A DNA stretch of 64,000 bases from Hamiltosporidium tvaerminnensis FI-OER-3-3 (Eukaryota > Fungi > Microsporidia): contig CM061247.1 of assembly GCA_022605425.2 (NCBI GenBank), positions 1,116,001 to 1,180,000 of the forward strand, given 5' to 3'. Every line of letters begins with the position of its first letter. The stretch's first letter is position 1. Both the position numbers and the translations under genes were made by a program. The notes under the pieces are model-generated. The model saw only the letters and a list, made by a program, of their open reading frames with translations. It did not search any database and was not told the DNA's origin. Positions 16,327 to 60,842 of the stretch are shown piece after piece.

Positions 16327-18677
16327 ATGAATATTTTAAAGAATTCTAGGAAGATGAACAACTTTGAGGATTTAAAGTTGTATTTCATGTTTAATATGTT
16401 GTATTATTTAATTTTATTTCAATTCATTATTGCAAATAACTTTACATATAGTTTCGAACGAAATGGAAATTTAGAGATTTTATTTTTCAGAATAAATAAA
16501 GAAGAAAGCGCTTTTAATACATTGGCACCTAACTTTTGTGATCTATATATAAGTTTTCATGAATCATTCGAGTCTAACCATGAAAAAACACGTGTTTTTA
16601 CGTACAAAAAAACAATTTCATCGGTTTTGAGATTTTGAATGATTTTATAACCTCCTCTAAATCTCTCCATAAGTACGAACGAGGAATAATTCAATGCAAT
16701 TTTGAACTATCATATATTCTTAGATTATCTAAAGATATAGCAGAAATTCCCTGTGTGTTAAATAATTATCAATTTAGTTGCATTCTGGCAGTCCTCAAAC
16801 GGTTAAAAGCCGTAGAAAATAAGAGACTATTTGAATTTATAAAATTTTTAATCATTACTGATTTTTTTTTATATAATAATTGTTTAAATATTCAGGAAAT
16901 ATTTGATTGGGCTTTGTCTCTTGAAATAAATGTTCAAAGTTCTAACATTATTTTATCAATAATTTTCAATTTTTTAATGCTTGCACATGTTTTTTATGAT
17001 GGAAATTTAATTATATTAGAGAATACAAGCGAAATATATGATTTAAAAGTTTTTGATACTCAAGTTTTGTATAAAAGTCTATTAGTTAATAATATAAAAG
17101 TATTCTATAGTTTAGAAAATGCTTTGAAAAATCCACAAATTTTAGAAACCTTTAAATCCATGTTTTTTATGCTTAATATAAGATCCATTATACTATATAA
17201 TAATCAAAGATCGAAAATTTTAGAATCGGATTTTGAATTTCCTATGTTCAAAATTGATGGTATAAAATCTATAACCATCATAGACTTTAGGGAATTTTCT
17301 TCTTCACTATTTTTAAAAAGACTTAGAAAGCATATTAGAAAAGATCTTGAAGTTTTAAAATTTCAAAATACATATATTGATATAAGTACTCTTACCACAA
17401 TTTTAAAAGATCAGCGGTTTAAAAAACTGGTACTGAATAATGGTGGCATACCCGTATTTTTTCATCTATCAAATAATTTTACAGGTTTGAATCAATCATT
17501 AAAATGTATTGATTTTAGAAATGTTACAGTAGATTTGGATTGGTGGAAAAAATTTTTTATGGAGGCAAATGTTGATAAAATAATTATTCATTTTTCAATT
17601 CAATTCGCACAAGACGCTTTTATAATGGCGTTTGGTTTCGTTCCGTTTCCATCATCCAACAATGTTACATACTTTAAAGTTATATTTGATAATCCTCAGA
17701 TACCTACAAGTTTTTTTGGATCACTATCATGTCTCAAGAATTTACGTACTTTGAAAATTTCTAAATATTTAGTGAGTGAAGCCATACATTCTCGTCTATT
17801 TGAGGTGATTGAAAATTTTAAAGTATTGAAATGTCTTGTCTTGCGCAAATATGGTTATTCAAAAAAATATTATATTTCCTTGTTTAAGAATCCTGCAATC
17901 GAAAATCTTCATTTGGAGAGTATTTTCCAAGATAGTGAAATTTTTATAGTAGATTTTCTTAATTATTATAGTTCTTTGACCAAGCTTGTTTTGATAAACA
18001 TTATGATCTGCCAATCTAGCTTTATAGAAATATTCGAACTAAAAAAATTGACAAGTTTAACATATAGATCATGCATTGTGGAACCCAAAATAAATTCTGA
18101 ATCACTTTGTTTAAAATCAAAAAATATCAGTTTATTAACAATTAACAGTAATAATTTAAATGATTTTAAGACCATAGACTTGTTAAGTAATCTCGAAACG
18201 ATAGAAAACTTGAATCTTTCCGTATGTAATTTACCATCTGGTTATTTATCGAAATTGAGTTTGTTATGCAATCTTAGTTTAAAAATACTTTCATATGAAT
18301 TCAACAGCTTAAATTTAAATGATTTGCAAAGAATGGGTAAACTTGAAACCTTAGAAGAATTAAATCTCCGTGGATGTAAATTCATACGGATTAATTTTTG
18401 CAAATTAAATTGCGAGTGTAAATTTTTATATTCTTTAAAGAAATTAGATATTTGGCTTGTTAGAATCAATAATGAAGATCTTAAATTTATATGTAATTTT
18501 AGAAATCTACGGAATTTAACTCTAGCTCTTTCCGGTTTAGATTTATATGCTTTAGAGGACTGTCTGATTCTTTTAAAAATCTATCAATTTTCTACTCATG
18601 TAAATATAGCCGATCGGGGGTTCATAAAACTATTCGGGTGTCTTAATGAAAAGGGTATTAGAGTAATAAGAATATGA
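16327..18677 (+). pseudogene. LRR protein gene (LRR-2) split by a single frameshift; pseudogene or sequencing error
   Basis: ORFs 16327-16638 and 16635-18677 are collinear with the intact paralogue at 24501-26861. Adding one A to the A7 run at 16606-16612 gives YKKNNFIGFEILNDF, matching the paralogue's YKKENFICFGLFDNF. A CCC motif lies upstream. Confidence 0.88.
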
Positions 18678-42843: not shown

Positions 42844-44763
42844 TTAAGTGGATTTTCTTTGAAGTTTCAAACGCATCTCCGGTCTTAAATATTGATTTAA
42901 AAGCACTATTGAAACAAAAATAATCGCAGCAGTTATTCCAAAAAATAAATAAGTCATTAGTTTTATATCAATCTCTTCTATTTCAAAAAAACCTCCTAAA
43001 ACGGATTTTAATTTATCTAAAGACCATGTTAAAGATGGAAAATATTTGCTATTTGAAAATATTTTTTTATCAATGGAATCAATACATTTCATTGAAAAAA
43101 TATATCTTATATCGTAAAAAGGCACTAATGCAAATATTCGAAATATTTTTATGTATTTAAATTTAGCAGTCTTTTTCAGATAAAAATGCATCAAAGCCAA
43201 TAGATGAGGTGAAATCGAAGTGCTTAGCGAAAATATCATGTTCAAAATTGATGGGAAAGCAGTATTATTTGCGATTGTACCAATTAAAAGTAACAACGGC
43301 AAAAAACTGAAATAAGATATTGAAGAGAATAAATAAAAGTGAGAATATAGAAAATCTCCAAAGTATAATTTAAATATACCAATAAAAAGTCCAGTACTTA
43401 GTATATTTAAAATAATTTGATAAAATAAAACTGAAGTATAATATGAGATGGTTGTAAAACTTCGCACGCTTATTTCTCGTTTAATACAATTTCTTTCATT
43501 CAGAAAAGAATGCGATACAGATCCATTAAAAACAGACGAAAAGACGGATTGAGCATTGATCAAAAGAACAGAAATGATTATTCTTTCGTATTCCCTTTTA
43601 ATGGCTAGTTCATTTGAATCGAAGTAAAAATCTCTAAGCTGTAATGCGTTTGTGTGATCTATTTGTAAAACGATACTTAGTAATGCTTGTACGCTGTATT
43701 CACGCCATTTAGCGTAAATACAATCAATGTTTATTATGCCAAATGCTAAAAGTGCGATGAAAAAATATAATAAATATTGCAAACTATTTGTACCGAAAAA
43801 ATATAATCTAAATCTCCTTTCGAGAAGAATTAATACGTGAAAAAAATTTGGGAAAAACCCGTTATAGAACATATTTCTTGTAGCTTCTTTTGTTATTTTA
43901 TATTCTTCTTGATTTCCCAATGTTTCTGTAATCATTTTATTAATAGAAGTAAGATTCTCAGGTATTTCTTTATATTCTTCTCTAAATTTAAGTATTTCAA
44001 TCGCGAATTCAGGTTCTGAACAAAATTCTCGTTTTATAAAACCAAATGATTCTGCCTTGGATTTGAACTCTAGCGCTGTATTATTATAAACTGTATTTCC
44101 GTTAAACAATAGAATTAATCGATCAAAAAGAAGAAACATTTCGTATGATGGTTGATGTATTGTAAATATAATCGTAACATTGTTTTTTTCGGCTATTTTT
44201 TTAAATAATTTTATTATATCTAATGCATATGACGAATCAAGCCCGCTGGTAGGTTCATCAAGTAAAATTATTTTAGGATCTGTAACAAGTTCAACTCCTA
44301 TCATTGTTCTCTTTCTTTCTCCACCTGAGATACTTTTTGTCCGATTATCGGCTACTTTCGTTAGATCTAAACTAGTTAGGATTGCATCAACTTTATCTTT
44401 TACTTTAATGTTCGTATTCTTGAGTCTAAATTTGGCTGAATATGTTATGGTTTGTCTAATAGTAAGATCGTCAAAACAACAGTCATCTTGATCTACAAAG
44501 GCAACATTATTGATCCAATCTGATTGTTTTCTTTCGGATTTATTACATGTAATCACTCCAGATGTTCTGCTGCCATCCGGAATTCTTCCTGCTAATGCTT
44601 TGAGTAAAGTAGTTTTTCCAGATCCACTTGGACCCATTATAGCGCACAATTCACCGACTTTAGCTTCTCCGTATGCATTTTGAACCAACTTTATATATTT
44701 CTTGTCTATACTTTTGTTTTTATTAATTAATTCAATATTTAAATTTTTCCATTCAACATTCAT
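42844..44763 (-). CDS. ABCG-family (White/BCRP-type) half ABC transporter, NBD-TMD
   Basis: Walker A GPSGSGKT, signature ISGGE, Walker B ILLDEPTSGLD, H-loop TIHQP and a C-terminal multi-TM domain. Start context is CCCCtt-ATG. Confidence 0.97.
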   Translation of the reverse strand: MNVEWKNLNIELINKNKSIDKKYIKLVQNAYGEAKVGELCAIMGPSGSGKTTLLKALAGRIPDGSRTSGVITCNKSERKQSDWINNVAFVDQDDCCFDDLTIRQTITYSAKFRLKNTNIKVKDKVDAILTSLDLTKVADNRTKSISGGERKRTMIGVELVTDPKIILLDEPTSGLDSSYALDIIKLFKKIAEKNNVTIIFTIHQPSYEMFLLFDRLILLFNGNTVYNNTALEFKSKAESFGFIKREFCSEPEFAIEILKFREEYKEIPENLTSINKMITETLGNQEEYKITKEATRNMFYNGFFPNFFHVLILLERRFRLYFFGTNSLQYLLYFFIALLAFGIINIDCIYAKWREYSVQALLSIVLQIDHTNALQLRDFYFDSNELAIKREYERIIISVLLINAQSVFSSVFNGSVSHSFLNERNCIKREISVRSFTTISYYTSVLFYQIILNILSTGLFIGIFKLYFGDFLYSHFYLFSSISYFSFLPLLLLIGTIANNTAFPSILNMIFSLSTSISPHLLALMHFYLKKTAKFKYIKIFRIFALVPFYDIRYIFSMKCIDSIDKKIFSNSKYFPSLTWSLDKLKSVLGGFFEIEEIDIKLMTYLFFGITAAIIFVSIVLLNQYLRPEMRLKLQRKST

Positions 44764-50092: not shown

Positions 50093-50797
50093 ATGGAAAA
50101 TAAAATAAAGCAAAAAACAGATATAAATGAAGATACATTTGTACAAAGAGAAGAGCCAACATTACTAGGATACCAGAAACTAAACAATTCAACTTATACA
50201 ATAGATTTGGATTCACCAGAGCTCAGAAATATTATAGATTTAGATTTAACAATATTAAATGAAGATCTAGAAAATAAAATATTTACGATGTTATACCATT
50301 CAAGAGAAATTGATTTACAAAAATGTGAACAAAGTAAAAATGAAGAGTTGGAATTGAAAAGGTATTTTTTGGACAGTCAACTTTGTTATTCGTGTGGGGA
50401 AACAGGACATACAGAAAGAAAATGTCCCAAAAGAAATACATTGGTGTGTATCCTTTGTAGTAGAACAGGGCATTACAAATATAATTGCCCAATGCTGGTT
50501 TGTATAAAGTGTCAAGAGTGTGGACATCGTGCCAATGCGTGTCAAGAAAGAACCGATAGGCGTAGATTTATGATGTGTAGACAATGTAGCGGTGAACATA
50601 ATATAACTGAGTGTCCAAGAAAATGGAGAAAATATTTTTATAACAGAAATTTAAATAATAATGTTCCTGTTAACAAAGCATGTCCTCTTTGTTGCGGTAA
50701 GAATCATTTTATTGATGATTGTAATGTCAAAAAAACCAAATTTTCTATTTTTACTTCTGATTTTAGAAGACAGACAACTTATTTTCCTAAAAAGTAA
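50093..50797 (+). CDS. AIR1: Air1/Air2 (ZCCHC7)-like zinc-knuckle subunit of the TRAMP complex
   Basis: Five CCHC knuckles (CYSC, CILC, CIKC, CRQC, CPLC) and KWRKY between knuckles 4 and 5, matching the Air IWRxY motif. Start context is CCG-ATG. Confidence 0.85.
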   Translation: MENKIKQKTDINEDTFVQREEPTLLGYQKLNNSTYTIDLDSPELRNIIDLDLTILNEDLENKIFTMLYHSREIDLQKCEQSKNEELELKRYFLDSQLCYSCGETGHTERKCPKRNTLVCILCSRTGHYKYNCPMLVCIKCQECGHRANACQERTDRRRFMMCRQCSGEHNITECPRKWRKYFYNRNLNNNVPVNKACPLCCGKNHFIDDCNVKKTKFSIFTSDFRRQTTYFPKK

Positions 50798-52488: not shown

Positions 52489-53030
52489 CTTGCCACATTT
52501 TTAAAAAGATGTGATGCTTTTAAATATAGAGTAGTCTTTTTATTACTTCTTCACTTAAATTATTTTAAAATTCCAAAAGTTTTTTATGGATAATTGGAGT
52601 AAAAAAAATTTATGGGTTTAGAAAAATTGATTATCAAAAAAAGTAGATAAAATATTTTCTTGTTTCATAGGCAACAAAAAAAATCCCAAAATCGGTAATC
52701 AAAAATTAAAAAATAAAAAAAAGATAAAAAAGATAAAAAAGAAAAAGATAAAGAAAAAGAAAGATAATATTAAAAATAATTATACTAAGAATAATAGAAG
52801 TCAAGCTCAACATATAATGTATGAATTAAGAAATAAATTAAACAAGCAATGATTTAAACATAAATAAAGCAATTACAAAAAGCTTATTTAGAATTATCTT
52901 TTTTAATAAAAAAAACATCTCAAATGTCAAAAAATATAAATTAAATTAGCTGTCTAATTCTTATAAAATTAGAATGAGAAATATAAAATAAATTAAAAAA
53001 AATAAATTATATTTCAAAGTAAAAGCTAAT

Positions 53031-53295
53031 ATATGAATTATAAAATAAATTAAAAAATAAATATTAGAATCTTAACATATGAATTATAAAATAAATTAAA
53101 AAATAAATATTAGAATCTTAACATATGAATTATAAAATAAATTAAAAAATAAATATTAGAATCTTAACATATGAATTATAAAATAAATTAAGAACTAAAT
53201 ATTAGAATCTTAACATATGAATTATAAAATAAATTAAGAACTAAATATTAGAATCGTAACATATGAATTATAAAATAAATTAAGAAATTAAATAT
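53031..53295. repeat. 46-bp AT-rich minisatellite, about 5.7 copies
   Basis: Unit atatgaattataaaataaattaaaaaataaatattagaatcttaac starts at 53031, 53077, 53123, 53169, 53215 and 53261 (partial). Confidence 0.95.
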
Positions 53296-53674
53296 TCGAA
53301 AGTAGAAGATAAGAAATAAATTAAAATAAATAAATTAAATTAGAAATTGAATTTAAATGTAGGAAATATAAACAAAGAAATTATTTTAATTTAAAGAATA
53401 AAAAAAATTCTCAATCGTTCTATTTATAATTTCAAGATTTAAAATAAAAATAGTAAATAAATAAAAATAAAAATTTAAATAATTTTATGGGTTTTTAATT
53501 CCCATTTTCATACACATTTTTTGATAAAAAAAATTATATTTTTTGTTTAATCGTTTCCTATCAAAATTATGAAAGAATTAATTGATAATTTATTCATTCT
53601 ATGGTTTAATATCTTGACATTTCCTTTTTAGCATAAATTAAAAAATTATAAATAAAAAAAAATTATAAAAATGC

Positions 53675-56600
53675 ATGAATTTTATGTGGAGACGTGGATT
53701 TCTGAGTGGAGTATATAAAGATGTAAGTAAGTTATCAGAACCAAGAAGTATGAAGGCTATATTAGGATATACTGTACTTGTATGTGCATTATATGTATTT
53801 AAATTCTTCTTATATGCTAAATCATGTATGAATATGAATAATTTTGTGATTGAAAAAATTTCTTATGATTTTGAAAAAAGCAATCTTATTAGATTTGATG
53901 CAAGAATAAAGAATTCAAAGATGCCTATAAGTTGTTCTGTTACAGAAATATCTGTTGATGTGTATTTGGATAACTGTGATCAGAAAATCGTGACATTGAA
54001 AATGAAAGATTGTTTTTTAGCAAAGGAATGTGAAATAAAATACAAAGATTTTATTGTTTTAGAACGAGAAAATAATTTTGATTTTAAAAAAATTACAAGT
54101 TGGTCTGAAAACAAAGGTGGACTTATTTTTGATGTTTCCAATGTTTTCAAAAGAAAAATTTTATTTTGGAATTTTAAATATAAAATCCAAAGGAAAGTGC
54201 CTTTAAAAATATTTGGAGATGAAAATTTTGAACCTTTTGATGTGAAAAGCATAAAAGTTTTACAGACGAAGGATTGTTTAATTTTGGCTCCAAATTTTTG
54301 TGTTTTGACTTTTCCATCTTTTTTAGAAATGAGAATTCCTTCTTTTGAATTTGCAGTTTTAGCAAATGAAATACCAATTTTTAAAATAAAATTAAGAAAT
54401 TCAGGGATAAAAAGTGAAAAAATTATAAATTGTTCATTGATTTTTGATAGAGAATATTTAGAAAATCTAAAAAGTTTTATTACAAGTACAATTGATGGTA
54501 ATGGATTTACATTAGGATTTGGTAATTTTAGTTATATGAATCATCACAGCCATACTTTGTTATATTTAGAAAACTTTTTAAAAGCTTTTAAATTGAAAAA
54601 TCAAAGCAAAAAAGAAATTTTTTTTACAAATAATGTTCCATTTACACAATTATGTGTCAAAAGTGTCAACACTGAAAGTATTACTGGAACATTAGAAATT
54701 CACAGCACTTTTTTAGATAATTTTTTAGATTCAAAACATATAATAAATAAGATTGAAATACCCGAGACATTTTTTGATGTCGATGTAGGTGAAACGAATG
54801 TTGGTAATTTGGTGGCAAAAAATATTAAAAAACCAGAATATTTACATTTTGAAATAATATTGTATCCGAAGGACTTAAATCTCTTTTTTAATACTTTTAT
54901 AATGCCTGAGGATTCTACCTTAAGAATACATTCGAAACAAGTGAGTTTTATTGGTGAAATTATTTCAAATGTAAATTTTTTATGGGATTTTAGAACAAAT
55001 ATTGGATTAAATAAAATAAATTTTACAGAAGATTTTCATGATGGAAATGGAATGAAACCAAATTTATTTCAAATGAAAATGGAATGTTTAAATGATGATA
55101 AAAGAATAACTGAATGGGAAATGAATTTATTATTACCAGAGATTTTAAATAATAGAGAACGTGTAAAACTTAAATGGTGCGATCTCAATTTGAATTTTAC
55201 TGTGGCAGAATTTAATTTTGATTTTTTTATTTCTTCAAATGAAGTAATTTTTATAAAAGATTTTAGGAGTAAAAGTGAAATTTGTAGAGGAAATTCTCCT
55301 TTAAATATTCATTTAAAACTTGAAAATACCGTAAACTACCAAGGATGCACTCTTATGTATTCAACAAAACAATTTATTAAAAAATATCAAAATTTGAAGG
55401 AAAATAAATTTAAGAAAAATCGAATACGAAATTTCTTTAGAAGCAGAAGAAATAATCAACATAATGATTTTGATAGAGATTCTTCATTTGAAGGAATATT
55501 TATAAATTTCTTGGAACATATCAAACCGAAACTGTGTTTTTATAATACCGAAACTGAAAATTTGAGTCTCATAAATTCTTATTTTGACAAAATTTTATCT
55601 GAAAAACACATAAAATTTTTTGGAATCGAAAGTATTTTTTGTGAGGAACCAAATTTTAATTTAGAAAAAATAATGAAAAAAGCGAAATTTAAATTTAATG
55701 ATTTGGAAAGTTTAACCAAGGCTTCGTTTTTAGTAACTTTACTTGGAAAAATAGAACAATTTACCGATTACAACATAAAATTTGAAATAATTTTTAAAGA
55801 ATTAAATTTTTTAATTTGTGACAACAGTTTAGAAGAAAAAAGTAATAAACCACAAACCCATGACATAAATAATAATATATTAGCTAACCAATTTAATTCT
55901 TTAAGAATTACAATTCCTAGTTTGATTTTAAGTTTTAATATTTCAGATTCCAAACTCAACAATTTAAAATTTGTTGATGAAAAAAATGAAAATTCTTTTT
56001 TAACATTTTTTGAGATTTTTTTAAACGAAAAAGATATTTTTATTCCTGAAAAGATTTCATTTTGTTCTGAAAATAATTTTAATTATTTTTCAAATGTTTT
56101 AAGTAAAATAATTGGATGTTTTGAATTTATTAGACCGAAATCTTCACAAATAAATTTTGTAAAGAGAAATTTAGATCCGATTACATCTTTTACTGAAGAG
56201 AATATGTATGTATGTCTCCATGTAATCTATAATTCGTTAGATAATGTAAATCCATTGCATCCTTCATTTGGTTTGACAAATAAGTGTGTTTTTAAAGTAA
56301 CTTTTTTTATTGTTTTACCTGAAGATTCTATTACACAAAGAAATAAAGCGACTCAAAACGAATTTGGATTTAAATGGCCAGGTTTTGAATTTTCAGTTTA
56401 CGATGAAAATGAAATATCTGATATTTCCAAGGTAATTGTATCTCCAGGTTCAATAATTCTTAGAAAAGAAGGAGATGAAAATAAAAGCGTACAAAAAATG
56501 AGAAAATTTACAATTTCATTTGAGATATATTCAAAGATTTATGAAGGAAACAATTTTATTTTATCTTTTAAAAAAATGGATTCAAGTTTTGAAAAATTTA

Positions 56601-58342
56601 GAACAAAAATATCAAAAAATAAGATAAAAACACTAACAAATTTGTTATTGAAAGGACGAGACGCAACATTTTCATCAGAAAACGAAGATTTAGGATTTTC
56701 TAAATATTTTAAAGAATTAAAAGAAATTCTTATAAATTTTTTAAATGATGACACGATCGATATAAATTTGAAAAATAGTATTTGTGATACAAAAATCAAA
56801 GTAGAAAGTGCGGGAGATACAAATCTTGATTGTGTTTATAAAAATATGAAAGTTTATAATTATTTTTTAAGAAATCAAATAAGTAAGAGGCTTGCTGTTT
56901 TATTGTCTAAAATAAGTTTAGAAAAATATTCAAAAAATATTATTTTTAATGTCCATGCTGAGTTACTCAAACCTTTGGATTTAAATTTAGGATTTTTACA
57001 AAAGAAAATTAAGGATGGAAAACTAAGAATTGGTGTGATTCAAAATATTGATTATGATTCACTTCAAAGTTCAGATGAAGAATTTGTCACGGCAAGAGAA
57101 GAAAGTGGAATATCAAATGAAAGTTTTGTTACTGCAAGGGAAGAAAGTGGAATATCAAATGAAAGTTTTGTTACTGCAAGGGAAGAAAGTAGTCAAGATT
57201 TTGTCACAATTAGAGAAGAAAGTAACAAAAGTTTTGCTACTTCAAATGAAGGAAGCCAAAGTTTTGTCACTGCAAGAGAAGGAAGCCAAAGTTTTGTCAC
57301 TGCAAGAGATGAAAGCCAAAGTTTTGTCACTGCAAGAGAAGACAACGAATTTTCAAATGAAAGTTTTGTTACTGCAAGAGAAGAACTAAGCAGCCAAACA
57401 ATTATCGATGATTATGAAACAATAAGAAGAACTACCGACAATGAAACCCCAAGAAATTCAATATTTGACAGACAATCACTGAGCAGAAATCTAAATATCG
57501 GTGGTTCTTTAATTACCAATAAAAATAGTGAAACCGACATTTTTTTTACTCCAAATTCACAAACAGATTTTGAAGAAGGAAGCTCTACAGATTCAGAAAA
57601 TACACCAAATCGCCCACCTTTAAACGATTCATTTACAGACGAACCAAATCTTTTATTCAGTATTTTTATTTATTTGCACCAAGAAAACAACTCACTTAAA
57701 ATAAAAATTCCAAACGAAAATAATTTAGATTCTTCAAATGAATTATCCTATTGCCAATCCAAACTCCTAGCTGCTTGCTCTACACTTCTAAACATTTGTA
57801 AATCTTTTAATCCAACATTTTCTTTGGATATTAAAAAAAGAATCAGATTTACACATTTCAAAAACAAAAATATTTTATTTCGTATTGAACATGAAGGAAA
57901 AACAATGGTAGAATCTGTATTAAACGAATGGGAAACCTATATAAATCATACAAAACTTACTTTTAAAATAGATCCATATTTTTTTGAAAATATAATGAAT
58001 ATTCAAGAATTTAAAATAATAATTTTTGAAAATAAAAATGTTATTTTTGAGCAAAATATAGAAATCGACCAACTCACCAAATACAGACTTCTTACTTTTT
58101 CTTTGAAATATATTTTTAAATTTATAAAAGCATATTTTCCAAAATTAAATCGAACATCATTTTTTAATGGTTTGGAATATTTAAAAAATGGGACTGTAAA
58201 TGCATTTAATTATACTTTTAATAAAAATAATTGGGAAAATATTAAAAAAATTGGAAATAATGTTGTAAATTCTACGTTTTATAGAAATAAGTTAGATTAT
58301 TTGAAAAGTGTTGGAAATAGATTTTTAAGTTTATTTTATTAG
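53675..58342 (+). CDS. 1555-aa protein with an N-terminal TM anchor, beta-rich body and acidic FVTARE repeat array
   Basis: Uninterrupted 4.7-kb ORF with TM segment ILGYTVLVCALYVFKFFLYA and alternating hydrophobic beta-strand patterns. No family was recognised with confidence. Confidence 0.9.
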   Translation: MNFMWRRGFLSGVYKDVSKLSEPRSMKAILGYTVLVCALYVFKFFLYAKSCMNMNNFVIEKISYDFEKSNLIRFDARIKNSKMPISCSVTEISVDVYLDNCDQKIVTLKMKDCFLAKECEIKYKDFIVLERENNFDFKKITSWSENKGGLIFDVSNVFKRKILFWNFKYKIQRKVPLKIFGDENFEPFDVKSIKVLQTKDCLILAPNFCVLTFPSFLEMRIPSFEFAVLANEIPIFKIKLRNSGIKSEKIINCSLIFDREYLENLKSFITSTIDGNGFTLGFGNFSYMNHHSHTLLYLENFLKAFKLKNQSKKEIFFTNNVPFTQLCVKSVNTESITGTLEIHSTFLDNFLDSKHIINKIEIPETFFDVDVGETNVGNLVAKNIKKPEYLHFEIILYPKDLNLFFNTFIMPEDSTLRIHSKQVSFIGEIISNVNFLWDFRTNIGLNKINFTEDFHDGNGMKPNLFQMKMECLNDDKRITEWEMNLLLPEILNNRERVKLKWCDLNLNFTVAEFNFDFFISSNEVIFIKDFRSKSEICRGNSPLNIHLKLENTVNYQGCTLMYSTKQFIKKYQNLKENKFKKNRIRNFFRSRRNNQHNDFDRDSSFEGIFINFLEHIKPKLCFYNTETENLSLINSYFDKILSEKHIKFFGIESIFCEEPNFNLEKIMKKAKFKFNDLESLTKASFLVTLLGKIEQFTDYNIKFEIIFKELNFLICDNSLEEKSNKPQTHDINNNILANQFNSLRITIPSLILSFNISDSKLNNLKFVDEKNENSFLTFFEIFLNEKDIFIPEKISFCSENNFNYFSNVLSKIIGCFEFIRPKSSQINFVKRNLDPITSFTEENMYVCLHVIYNSLDNVNPLHPSFGLTNKCVFKVTFFIVLPEDSITQRNKATQNEFGFKWPGFEFSVYDENEISDISKVIVSPGSIILRKEGDENKSVQKMRKFTISFEIYSKIYEGNNFILSFKKMDSSFEKFRTKISKNKIKTLTNLLLKGRDATFSSENEDLGFSKYFKELKEILINFLNDDTIDINLKNSICDTKIKVESAGDTNLDCVYKNMKVYNYFLRNQISKRLAVLLSKISLEKYSKNIIFNVHAELLKPLDLNLGFLQKKIKDGKLRIGVIQNIDYDSLQSSDEEFVTAREESGISNESFVTAREESGISNESFVTAREESSQDFVTIREESNKSFATSNEGSQSFVTAREGSQSFVTARDESQSFVTAREDNEFSNESFVTAREELSSQTIIDDYETIRRTTDNETPRNSIFDRQSLSRNLNIGGSLITNKNSETDIFFTPNSQTDFEEGSSTDSENTPNRPPLNDSFTDEPNLLFSIFIYLHQENNSLKIKIPNENNLDSSNELSYCQSKLLAACSTLLNICKSFNPTFSLDIKKRIRFTHFKNKNILFRIEHEGKTMVESVLNEWETYINHTKLTFKIDPYFFENIMNIQEFKIIIFENKNVIFEQNIEIDQLTKYRLLTFSLKYIFKFIKAYFPKLNRTSFFNGLEYLKNGTVNAFNYTFNKNNWENIKKIGNNVVNSTFYRNKLDYLKSVGNRFLSLFY
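57071..57385 (+). repeat. Coding tandem repeat encoding (E/S/D)FVTARE x9
   Basis: Core ttttgt(t/c)actgcaag recurs at 30-42 nt spacing, always in frame. Seven units read FVTAR(E/D), plus FVTIREE and FATSNE. Confidence 0.95.
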
Positions 58343-60155: not shown

Positions 60156-60842
60156 TTATTTTTTTAACTTCATAGTAACCAAAGAATTTTTTACAGAAGA
60201 TATTTCGGATTTTCTTTCAACTAATGTTTCACTGTCGTATAATTCATATTCTTTTTCAGTGTATTTCTTCATATAAATAATAAAATCATTGACTGTTTTT
60301 TTAGAACTAATTTGAATTTTAATTCTTCTGCCAGACAATAAAACTTTAAAAAAAACATCTCCGTCTTCATCTACAATGATAGAATCTGGACATTCAATTT
60401 CTTTTTCTTTTTTTCCAGAAAGTGTATGGGATGTTCCTGTAAAGTGTTCAACCTTAACTTTATATTCCTCATTTTCTCTGTCATTAAAAACAACCTCAGC
60501 TGTTTCTCCATCCTCTCCTAAAATATTTCTGTCAAATTCTCGATTATCTAACATTTTTTTAAGATCGCGATTTTCTTTCTTTTTGTAGTCGTAAAACACG
60601 TCTTCTACCAGAATTCCATTCTTGTAAACAGTAATTGTCTTTATTTTTTTATTGTCGCCTCCTTCAACCATCAGTCCACTTCTGTATCCACCTACATACA
60701 AATCATTACCTTTCTTCTTTTTAATTGCGGTTATGGCTTTTTCTGCATCGTTTTTACTTTCCAGTAATGCCTTTTCTGCCACTTCTTTTGTACATTTTGT
60801 AGCTTCTTGTACTTTTCGTACCAAATAAAAATCTGAGTTCAT
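60156..60842 (-). CDS. SHP1: Shp1/p47 (UBA-SEP-UBX) Cdc48/p97 cofactor
   Basis: N-terminal UBA-like helices (VQEATKCTKEVAEKALLESKNDAEKAI), YVGGYRSGLMV, SEP-like ITVYKNG, SHP-box-like FTGTSHTL and a ubiquitin-like C-terminus. CCCC lies 6 nt upstream of the ATG. Confidence 0.85.
   Translation of the reverse strand: MNSDFYLVRKVQEATKCTKEVAEKALLESKNDAEKAITAIKKKKGNDLYVGGYRSGLMVEGGDNKKIKTITVYKNGILVEDVFYDYKKKENRDLKKMLDNREFDRNILGEDGETAEVVFNDRENEEYKVKVEHFTGTSHTLSGKKEKEIECPDSIIVDEDGDVFFKVLLSGRRIKIQISSKKTVNDFIIYMKKYTEKEYELYDSETLVERKSEISSVKNSLVTMKLKK

Follow-up and report, generated by a model that had tools for sequence, protein, structure and literature searches.

A copy-number-variable array of FFAT-like motifs in a probable LEA-2 membrane protein of the microsporidian Hamiltosporidium tvaerminnensis

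[quoted passage not shown] Judged from its sequence, the array is FFAT-like rather than an established phospho-FFAT, because a single unit reaches the published score and its FFAT residues are not specifically conserved; binding to VAP is a prediction. We tentatively favour, at somewhat below an even chance, a reading in which the protein would be a lipid-binding rod exposed at the surface, its array, once phosphorylated, recruiting host VAP through avidity. This reading stands above chance because an FFAT-like array here meets a predicted lipid-transfer fold, lipid-transfer proteins being the kind in which FFATs usually sit, and because of a synonymous bias in the cores of the units. The gene is present as a single copy in the H. 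tvaerminnensis genome, and the only close relatives of its product are proteins of H. tvaerminnensis and H. magnivora, two microsporidia parasitising Daphnia.

The FFAT-like repeat array

The nine in-frame units described in an earlier note on this DNA are all present (57080-57382, aa 1136-1236), starting at 57080, 57122, 57164, 57197, 57230, 57260, 57290, 57320 and 57362. They lie in an insert (57038-57664, +, aa ~1122-1330) without counterpart in orthologues from other genera. This insert is of low complexity, acidic (42 D/E vs 16 K/R) and S/T-rich; the note had called it acidic, Ser-rich and probably disordered, disorder being a prediction from this composition. Unit 1 (57080-57100, +), EFVTARE preceded by LQSSDE, is the best motif, and units 2-9 (57122-57382, +) follow at spacings of 14, 11 or 10 residues. 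Unit 5 is degenerate and its sequence suggests that it is probably an in-frame deletion hybrid, with a core joined to an SNE linker. Unit 4 resembles at the DNA level the downstream sequence DYETIR which, like IFFTP, had also been listed by the earlier note, both being present (at 57410 and 57539). DYETIRR (57410-57430, +), which has the shape of a YxxI sorting signal or of an LC3-interacting region (LIR), was rejected as an FFAT (score 6.5). IFFTPNS (57539-57559, +) is an independent weak phospho-FFAT-like site scoring 4.0 (3.5 if phosphorylated), similar in shape to the non-canonical motif of the Chlamydia protein IncV.

These scores come from a table rebuilt from Mikitova and Levine (PMC3261905), which reproduces 16 of the 17 published scores; a lower score denotes a better FFAT and the published cut-off is 2.0. 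The score given for phosphorylated motifs is our own variant of the table, in which the position-4 penalty is zeroed, and lowers each unit by 0.5. Unit 1 scores 2.0 (1.5 with T4 phosphorylated), units 2, 3, 6 and 9 score 3.0, units 4, 7 and 8 score 3.5 and unit 5 is worse. All eight sites scoring ≤3.5 in the whole protein fall inside the array. Permutation of the unit residues yielded an array as good as this one in 0.1-2% of trials (P 0.001-0.02), and shuffling of the insert produced a best site ≤2.0 in 2.8% of trials (P 0.03). Among 45 other ORFs of this genome (19,961 residues), only the canonical motif in the parasite's ORP scores ≤2.0, and 11 sites reach 3.5. Because the array copies are not independent and the testing was post hoc, the statistics indicate a match to the FFAT register that is better than chance and do not imply function.

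Two adjacent Glu-rich ORFs of the background set (L018:338-1615 and 1599-2672, +; G000:C2:~405-407 kb), possibly one frameshifted gene, hold several F-V-S/T-x-x-E sites, three of them at 3.0-3.5, and provide a useful gauge of chance FFAT look-alikes. In the window, IEEQI-EFFTIKE, the one FFAT-like site of a leucine-rich-repeat-like protein (24501-26861, +), scores 2.5.

At the DNA level, TRF detected 42-bp and 30-bp tandem arrays at this place. The comparison of repeat number called for by the earlier note revealed 9-11 units across Hamiltosporidium assemblies (11, 11, 10 and 10 in the four other ones, always in frame) and none in four orthologues from other genera. The array is therefore a true variable-number repeat, five assemblies ruling out an assembly artefact; contigs from short reads of four public runs cover the locus and break within the repeat. 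A genome search found exact matches of the DNA unit pattern at this locus only, and the array is devoid of the 8-base DNA core of a 27/30-bp minisatellite family found genome-wide in Hamiltosporidium, so that its membership in this family was rejected. A homogeneous non-coding minisatellite of 46 bp (~6-7 copies, 53027-53345) is located 330 bases upstream of the gene and is itself preceded by an A-rich tract (52697-52779).

Outside the array, isolates differ by 36 synonymous and 22 replacement changes, indicating purifying selection on the gene. Within the array, 13 distinct core haplotypes were found, in which F2 and T4 vary synonymously only (three changes, no replacement), position 1 is limited to E, D or S and position 7 to E or D. 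Excluding the two hybrid units (4 and 5), the core shows seven synonymous and three replacement changes (P 0.002 against neutrality). By hand count, the four codons that open the linker in the 14-residue units have diverged mostly through replacements.

Identity of the protein

The earlier note had not identified the protein, which is probably a divergent member of the Tag1/DUF3712 group of tandem LEA-2 proteins. This assignment rests on the agreement of feature and fold searches, each at a moderate score. The language-model Atlas search returned DUF3712/Tag1/LEA-2 clusters at all of its top ranks (0.89, 198 shared features), the 10 best named matches all belonging to one clan. A cluster-representative search retrieved four orthologues with 23-26% identity, from Binucleata daphniae, Conglomerata obtusa and two sequencing runs; they are 1176-1364 aa long and lack the acidic repeat. 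The model of the Binucleata orthologue (first 400 residues past the anchor, pLDDT 64) contains three similar beta-sandwich domains. VIA ranks 3BUT, an archaeal LEA-2 protein, first among its matches (Z 6.8, below the VIA caution line of Z 8; rmsd 6.0; 117 of 125 residues aligned), the structure Atlas relates it to LEA_2 and DUF3712 clusters (TM 0.29-0.37) and Foldseek returned generic Ig-fold chains.

From the orthologue model, the structural match and the Atlas, three tandem LEA-2-like beta-sandwich domains are predicted in the Hamiltosporidium protein (53828-55015, +; aa ~52-182, 190-312 and 320-447). They are followed by a further beta-rich region (55052-57037, +) that probably comprises more LEA-2-like repeats, as suggested by the strand/helix pattern of a low-confidence model and by weak internal similarity. 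The fold evidence thus comes from an orthologue and from the N-terminal third, the remaining body being assigned from strand pattern and internal similarity. Internal profile comparisons are weak (best D2-D3, E 4.5e-4, probability 33%), and a D7-D8 match was discarded as an artefact of overlapping orthologue segments. The model of aa 1-1125 (pLDDT 37) was uninformative in Foldseek and gave only 3BUT in VIA, for the first domain (Z 4.0). The region past the insert has no significant alignment to the orthologues. The C-terminus of all five proteins carries amphipathic helices, whose hydrophobic moments of 0.51-0.60 are among the highest 1% of the windows of each protein; these helices are basic in the Hamiltosporidium protein (58103-58336, +, aa 1477-1554).

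No Pfam family, including DUF3712, LEA_2 and Tag1_C, was found for this protein or its orthologues. No match resulted from the PF12505 search of its own genome, a search that had no positive control, from a search of PDB sequences by the family profile or from the full-length Atlas search, and two further homologue searches and a metagenome scan added no relatives. An RBG/VPS13-type identity was rejected, the VPS13_N match of this genome being another locus. That locus (L010, G000:C2:1466340-1469912), a candidate short or split VPS13 by its sequence, has an open frame just ~700-750 aa long, with ~15 copies of a 10-aa HPVNN-type repeat and no FFAT ≤3.0. Among the orthologues, that of Conglomerata obtusa (P0009) has its own acidic/Asn-rich insert at another location (aa ~570-690), which holds no scoring FFAT (best 4.0); its best FFAT-like site, EYFDAKT (3.0), lies within a predicted strand.

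Tag1 and other DUF3712 proteins are type II proteins with tandem LEA-2 domains and a predicted lipid groove, lipid binding by the LEA-2 family being itself a prediction (bioRxiv 2021.03.12.435176). Compared with this group (PF12505, PF22786, PF26174) and with the LEA-2 superfamily (3BUT, TMEM106B, Vac7), the Hamiltosporidium protein is alike in its single N-terminal anchor preceded by basic residues, in its tandem beta-sandwiches of ~125 aa with the order five strands-helix-strands, and in that its nearest Atlas clusters and top structural match belong to LEA-2. It differs by its C-terminal amphipathic helices, its acidic repeat insert and the lack of a Pfam match.

Topology and the parasite's own FFAT system

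The protein starts with a basic tail of 27 aa (53675-53755, +), predicted from its K/R excess to face the parasite cytosol. The tail is followed by the only predicted transmembrane segment (53756-53812, +, aa 28-46, Kyte-Doolittle 2.06, no other ≥1.6), a signal anchor whose cleavage is possible. The orthologues have net charges before/after the anchor of +5/0, +3/-1, +7/+2 and +7/-1; the Hamiltosporidium protein has +2/+1, a weak bias. This positive-inside bias implies a cytosolic N-terminus and translocation of the remainder, including the array. The sequence thus probably specifies a type II orientation, with the array outside the parasite cytosol, in agreement with the precedent of Tag1, Vac7 and TMEM106B. 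Sequons for N-glycans are neither enriched nor depleted and their counts are uninformative on topology. Since the array would be translocated, it could meet VAP only if the protein is at the parasite surface or shed, facing the host cytosol. Therefore, of the two contacts proposed by the earlier note, that with the parasite ER is unlikely and that with the host ER survives only for a surface-located protein.

The parasite has what looks from its sequence like a working FFAT system, with an intact VAP and an ORP. Its VAP/Scs2 (L001:1345-1815, -, G000:C8) is minimal (~152 aa), with an MSP domain, almost no linker and a C-terminal anchor. It keeps the TT motif and the K-F-M binding strand; the equivalents of K50/K52 are R/R, and K94/M96 are kept. 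An Osh1-like ORP of 726 aa (L009:307-2487, +, G000:C14) contains a canonical EFFDATD, which scores 1.5, and KFYDFET as a second site with a weaker score of 3.0. Binding of the array to this VAP is unlikely because the parasite MSP domain would be on the opposite side of the membrane.

Other genes of the window encode three related-looking leucine-rich-repeat-like proteins (5856-8486, 16635-18677 and 24501-26861, +), a zinc-knuckle (Air1/2-like) protein (50093-50797, +), a SEP-domain p47/Shp1-like protein (60156-60842, -) and, by sequence, an ABCG-type half transporter (42844-44763, -). Orthologue neighbourhoods have nothing in common with the window; none of the Air1/2-like, p47/Shp1-like and ABCG-type neighbours is shared with them.

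Discussion

In the reading that we favour, the type II protein would expose a short basic tail to the parasite cytosol and, beyond its single anchor, a long LEA-2 chain with predicted lipid-binding grooves, ending in amphipathic helices. The parasite secretory pathway would carry it to the cell surface, from which the rod would extend into the cytosol of the host. A loop close to its distal end would, in Hamiltosporidium, have acquired one passable FFAT-like motif, then multiplied by unequal crossing-over. T4, which stands in a T-x-x-E context fitting the CK2 consensus, and neighbouring serines would be phosphorylated by host kinases. Eight to 10 motifs, each weak by itself, would then attach to host VAP through avidity and keep the tip at the host ER. 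In the manner of IncV and TgVIP1, the rod would thereby tether this ER and might also take up lipid. The LEA-2 chain, the type II orientation and the amphipathic end are supported by prediction; the surface location, phosphorylation, VAP binding and lipid transfer are what we infer. In Neoflabelliforma dubium, another microsporidian of cladocerans, parasite stages contact the host cytoplasm directly (PMC9911548).

The array resembles known phospho-FFATs (STARD3, MIGA2, FIP200, PTPIP51 and Kv2; PMC7705450) by F2, T4, A5, E/D7 and an S/D/E-rich flank. It differs from them by V3 in every unit, by the thin acidic tract before units 2-9 and by its 9-11 copies instead of one or two, and it is a predicted motif conserved within the genus only. 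Unit 1 has the same score of 2.0 and nearly the same pattern as DFLTASE of AKAP110, which confers weak ER targeting, and multimerised weak FFAT motifs gain ER targeting (PMC3261905). Chlamydia IncV (PMC9286742) and Toxoplasma TgVIP1 (PMC12669045) are likewise membrane-anchored pathogen proteins with FFAT-like motifs for host VAP, and the serine-rich flanks of IncV are activated by host CK2 (PMC9286742). However, both proteins carry two motifs, of which one is strong, their binding is proven, they face the host in a vacuole membrane and they have no LEA-2 chain. The general architecture, in which one end is anchored, the long body is beta-rich and amphipathic helices and an FFAT serve for docking, is also that of the bridge-like lipid transfer proteins of the RBG superfamily (VPS13/ATG2). 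The Hamiltosporidium protein differs from these bridges by LEA-2 sandwiches in place of RBG repeats, by the opposite orientation of its anchor and by a groove whose continuity is putative.

Several observations weigh against the recruitment of host VAP. The motif array claimed by the earlier note stands as regards its register and the AKAP110-like score of unit 1, but this unit is the only one to meet the 2.0 cut-off, seven others being at 3.0-3.5, and three background sites at 3.0-3.5 occur in one Glu-rich protein. F2, T4, A5 and E7 are retained as the note proposed, but V3 and R6 are retained as well within the genus, so that the core is conserved as a block and FFAT-specific selection is unsupported. 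Including the hybrid units, core changes amount to seven synonymous and 11 replacement (P 0.08), and the synonymous excess of the core equals the gene-wide ratio (P 0.73). The conservation of FFAT residues in orthologues that the note had expected is in part contradicted: the four proteins from other genera lack the array and have no FFAT ≤2.5 (none better than 3.0), and the FFAT residues are no more conserved in orthologues than their neighbours. Furthermore, coding minisatellites are common in this genome, we found no RNA run containing the gene and no paper on the Hamiltosporidium parasite-host interface, and the host ER is near E. intestinalis but not selectively recruited (PMC10667486). 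Lastly, Tag1, Vac7 and TMEM106B are vacuolar or lysosomal, with lumenal LEA-2 domains (bioRxiv 2021.03.12.435176).

This lumenal precedent, the scores of most units, the lack of FFATs in the four orthologues and the frequency of coding repeats also favour a Tag1-like protein of the parasite vacuole or secretory lumen, or of a spore-stage surface away from any cytosol. The array would then be a lineage-specific coding minisatellite in a loop that tolerates it, serving as no more than a spacer, acidic or glycosylated, and its match to FFAT would be incidental. We rate this explanation only a little below the favoured one. The type II charge bias, the drift of the array between 9 and 11 copies and the N-x-S sequon that precedes four units fit it too. 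It accounts poorly for the permutation and background statistics, for the synonymous bias of the core compared to the replacement-diverged first linker codons, for a unit that lies outside any DNA-level repeat family and for the co-occurrence of the array with a predicted lipid-transfer fold.

The array might instead be a selected multivalent ligand for a partner other than VAP, of the Atg8/LC3 type (F/Y-x-x-I/L after acidic residues), an adaptor mu-subunit (YxxI/L) or another phospho-dependent protein. The insert does contain YDSL, FVTI and YETI following acidic residues, and R6 and V3, irrelevant or suboptimal for an FFAT, are retained. This alternative is nevertheless improbable: the large hydrophobic residue needed at the fourth place is present in only one of the nine units, and A is optimal at FFAT position 5 in the published matrix (PMC3261905). 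Location of the bulk of the protein in the parasite cytosol by an opposite or hairpin anchor, with binding of the array to parasite VAP at an internal ER contact, would suit the parasite's VAP and ORP, the weak charge bias of the Hamiltosporidium protein and the uninformative sequons, but it is very improbable given the charges of the four orthologues (+3 to +7 ahead of the anchor, -1 to +2 behind it) and the type II orientation of the characterised eukaryotic LEA-2 membrane proteins.

Full-text literature searches turned up no publication that connects microsporidia with FFAT or LEA-2 proteins; the paper that defined the Tag1/LEA-2 family mentions neither FFAT nor a microsporidian member (bioRxiv 2021.03.12.435176), and microsporidia do not figure in a review of pathogen contact sites. 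Should it prove not to bind VAP, the array would be no more than a coding minisatellite, carried by a member of a newly assigned family. For the supply of host lipids to microsporidia and their engagement of the host ER through VAP, the protein carrying the array provides one named candidate, and the unannotated microsporidian branch of the Tag1/LEA-2 family offers a place to test the predicted lipid transfer by LEA-2 domains. A bolder version of the surface-exposed rod, which we hold to be unlikely, is that microsporidia converted a lumenal multi-LEA-2 protein of fungi into a surface-anchored lipid bridge that would reach through the host cytosol and dock on host membranes by its terminal amphipathic helices, Hamiltosporidium having added a copy-number-variable, host-kinase-activated phospho-FFAT array that captures host VAP. 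If true, microsporidia would have their first named host-ER tether, and the bridge would be built on LEA-2 instead of RBG domains.
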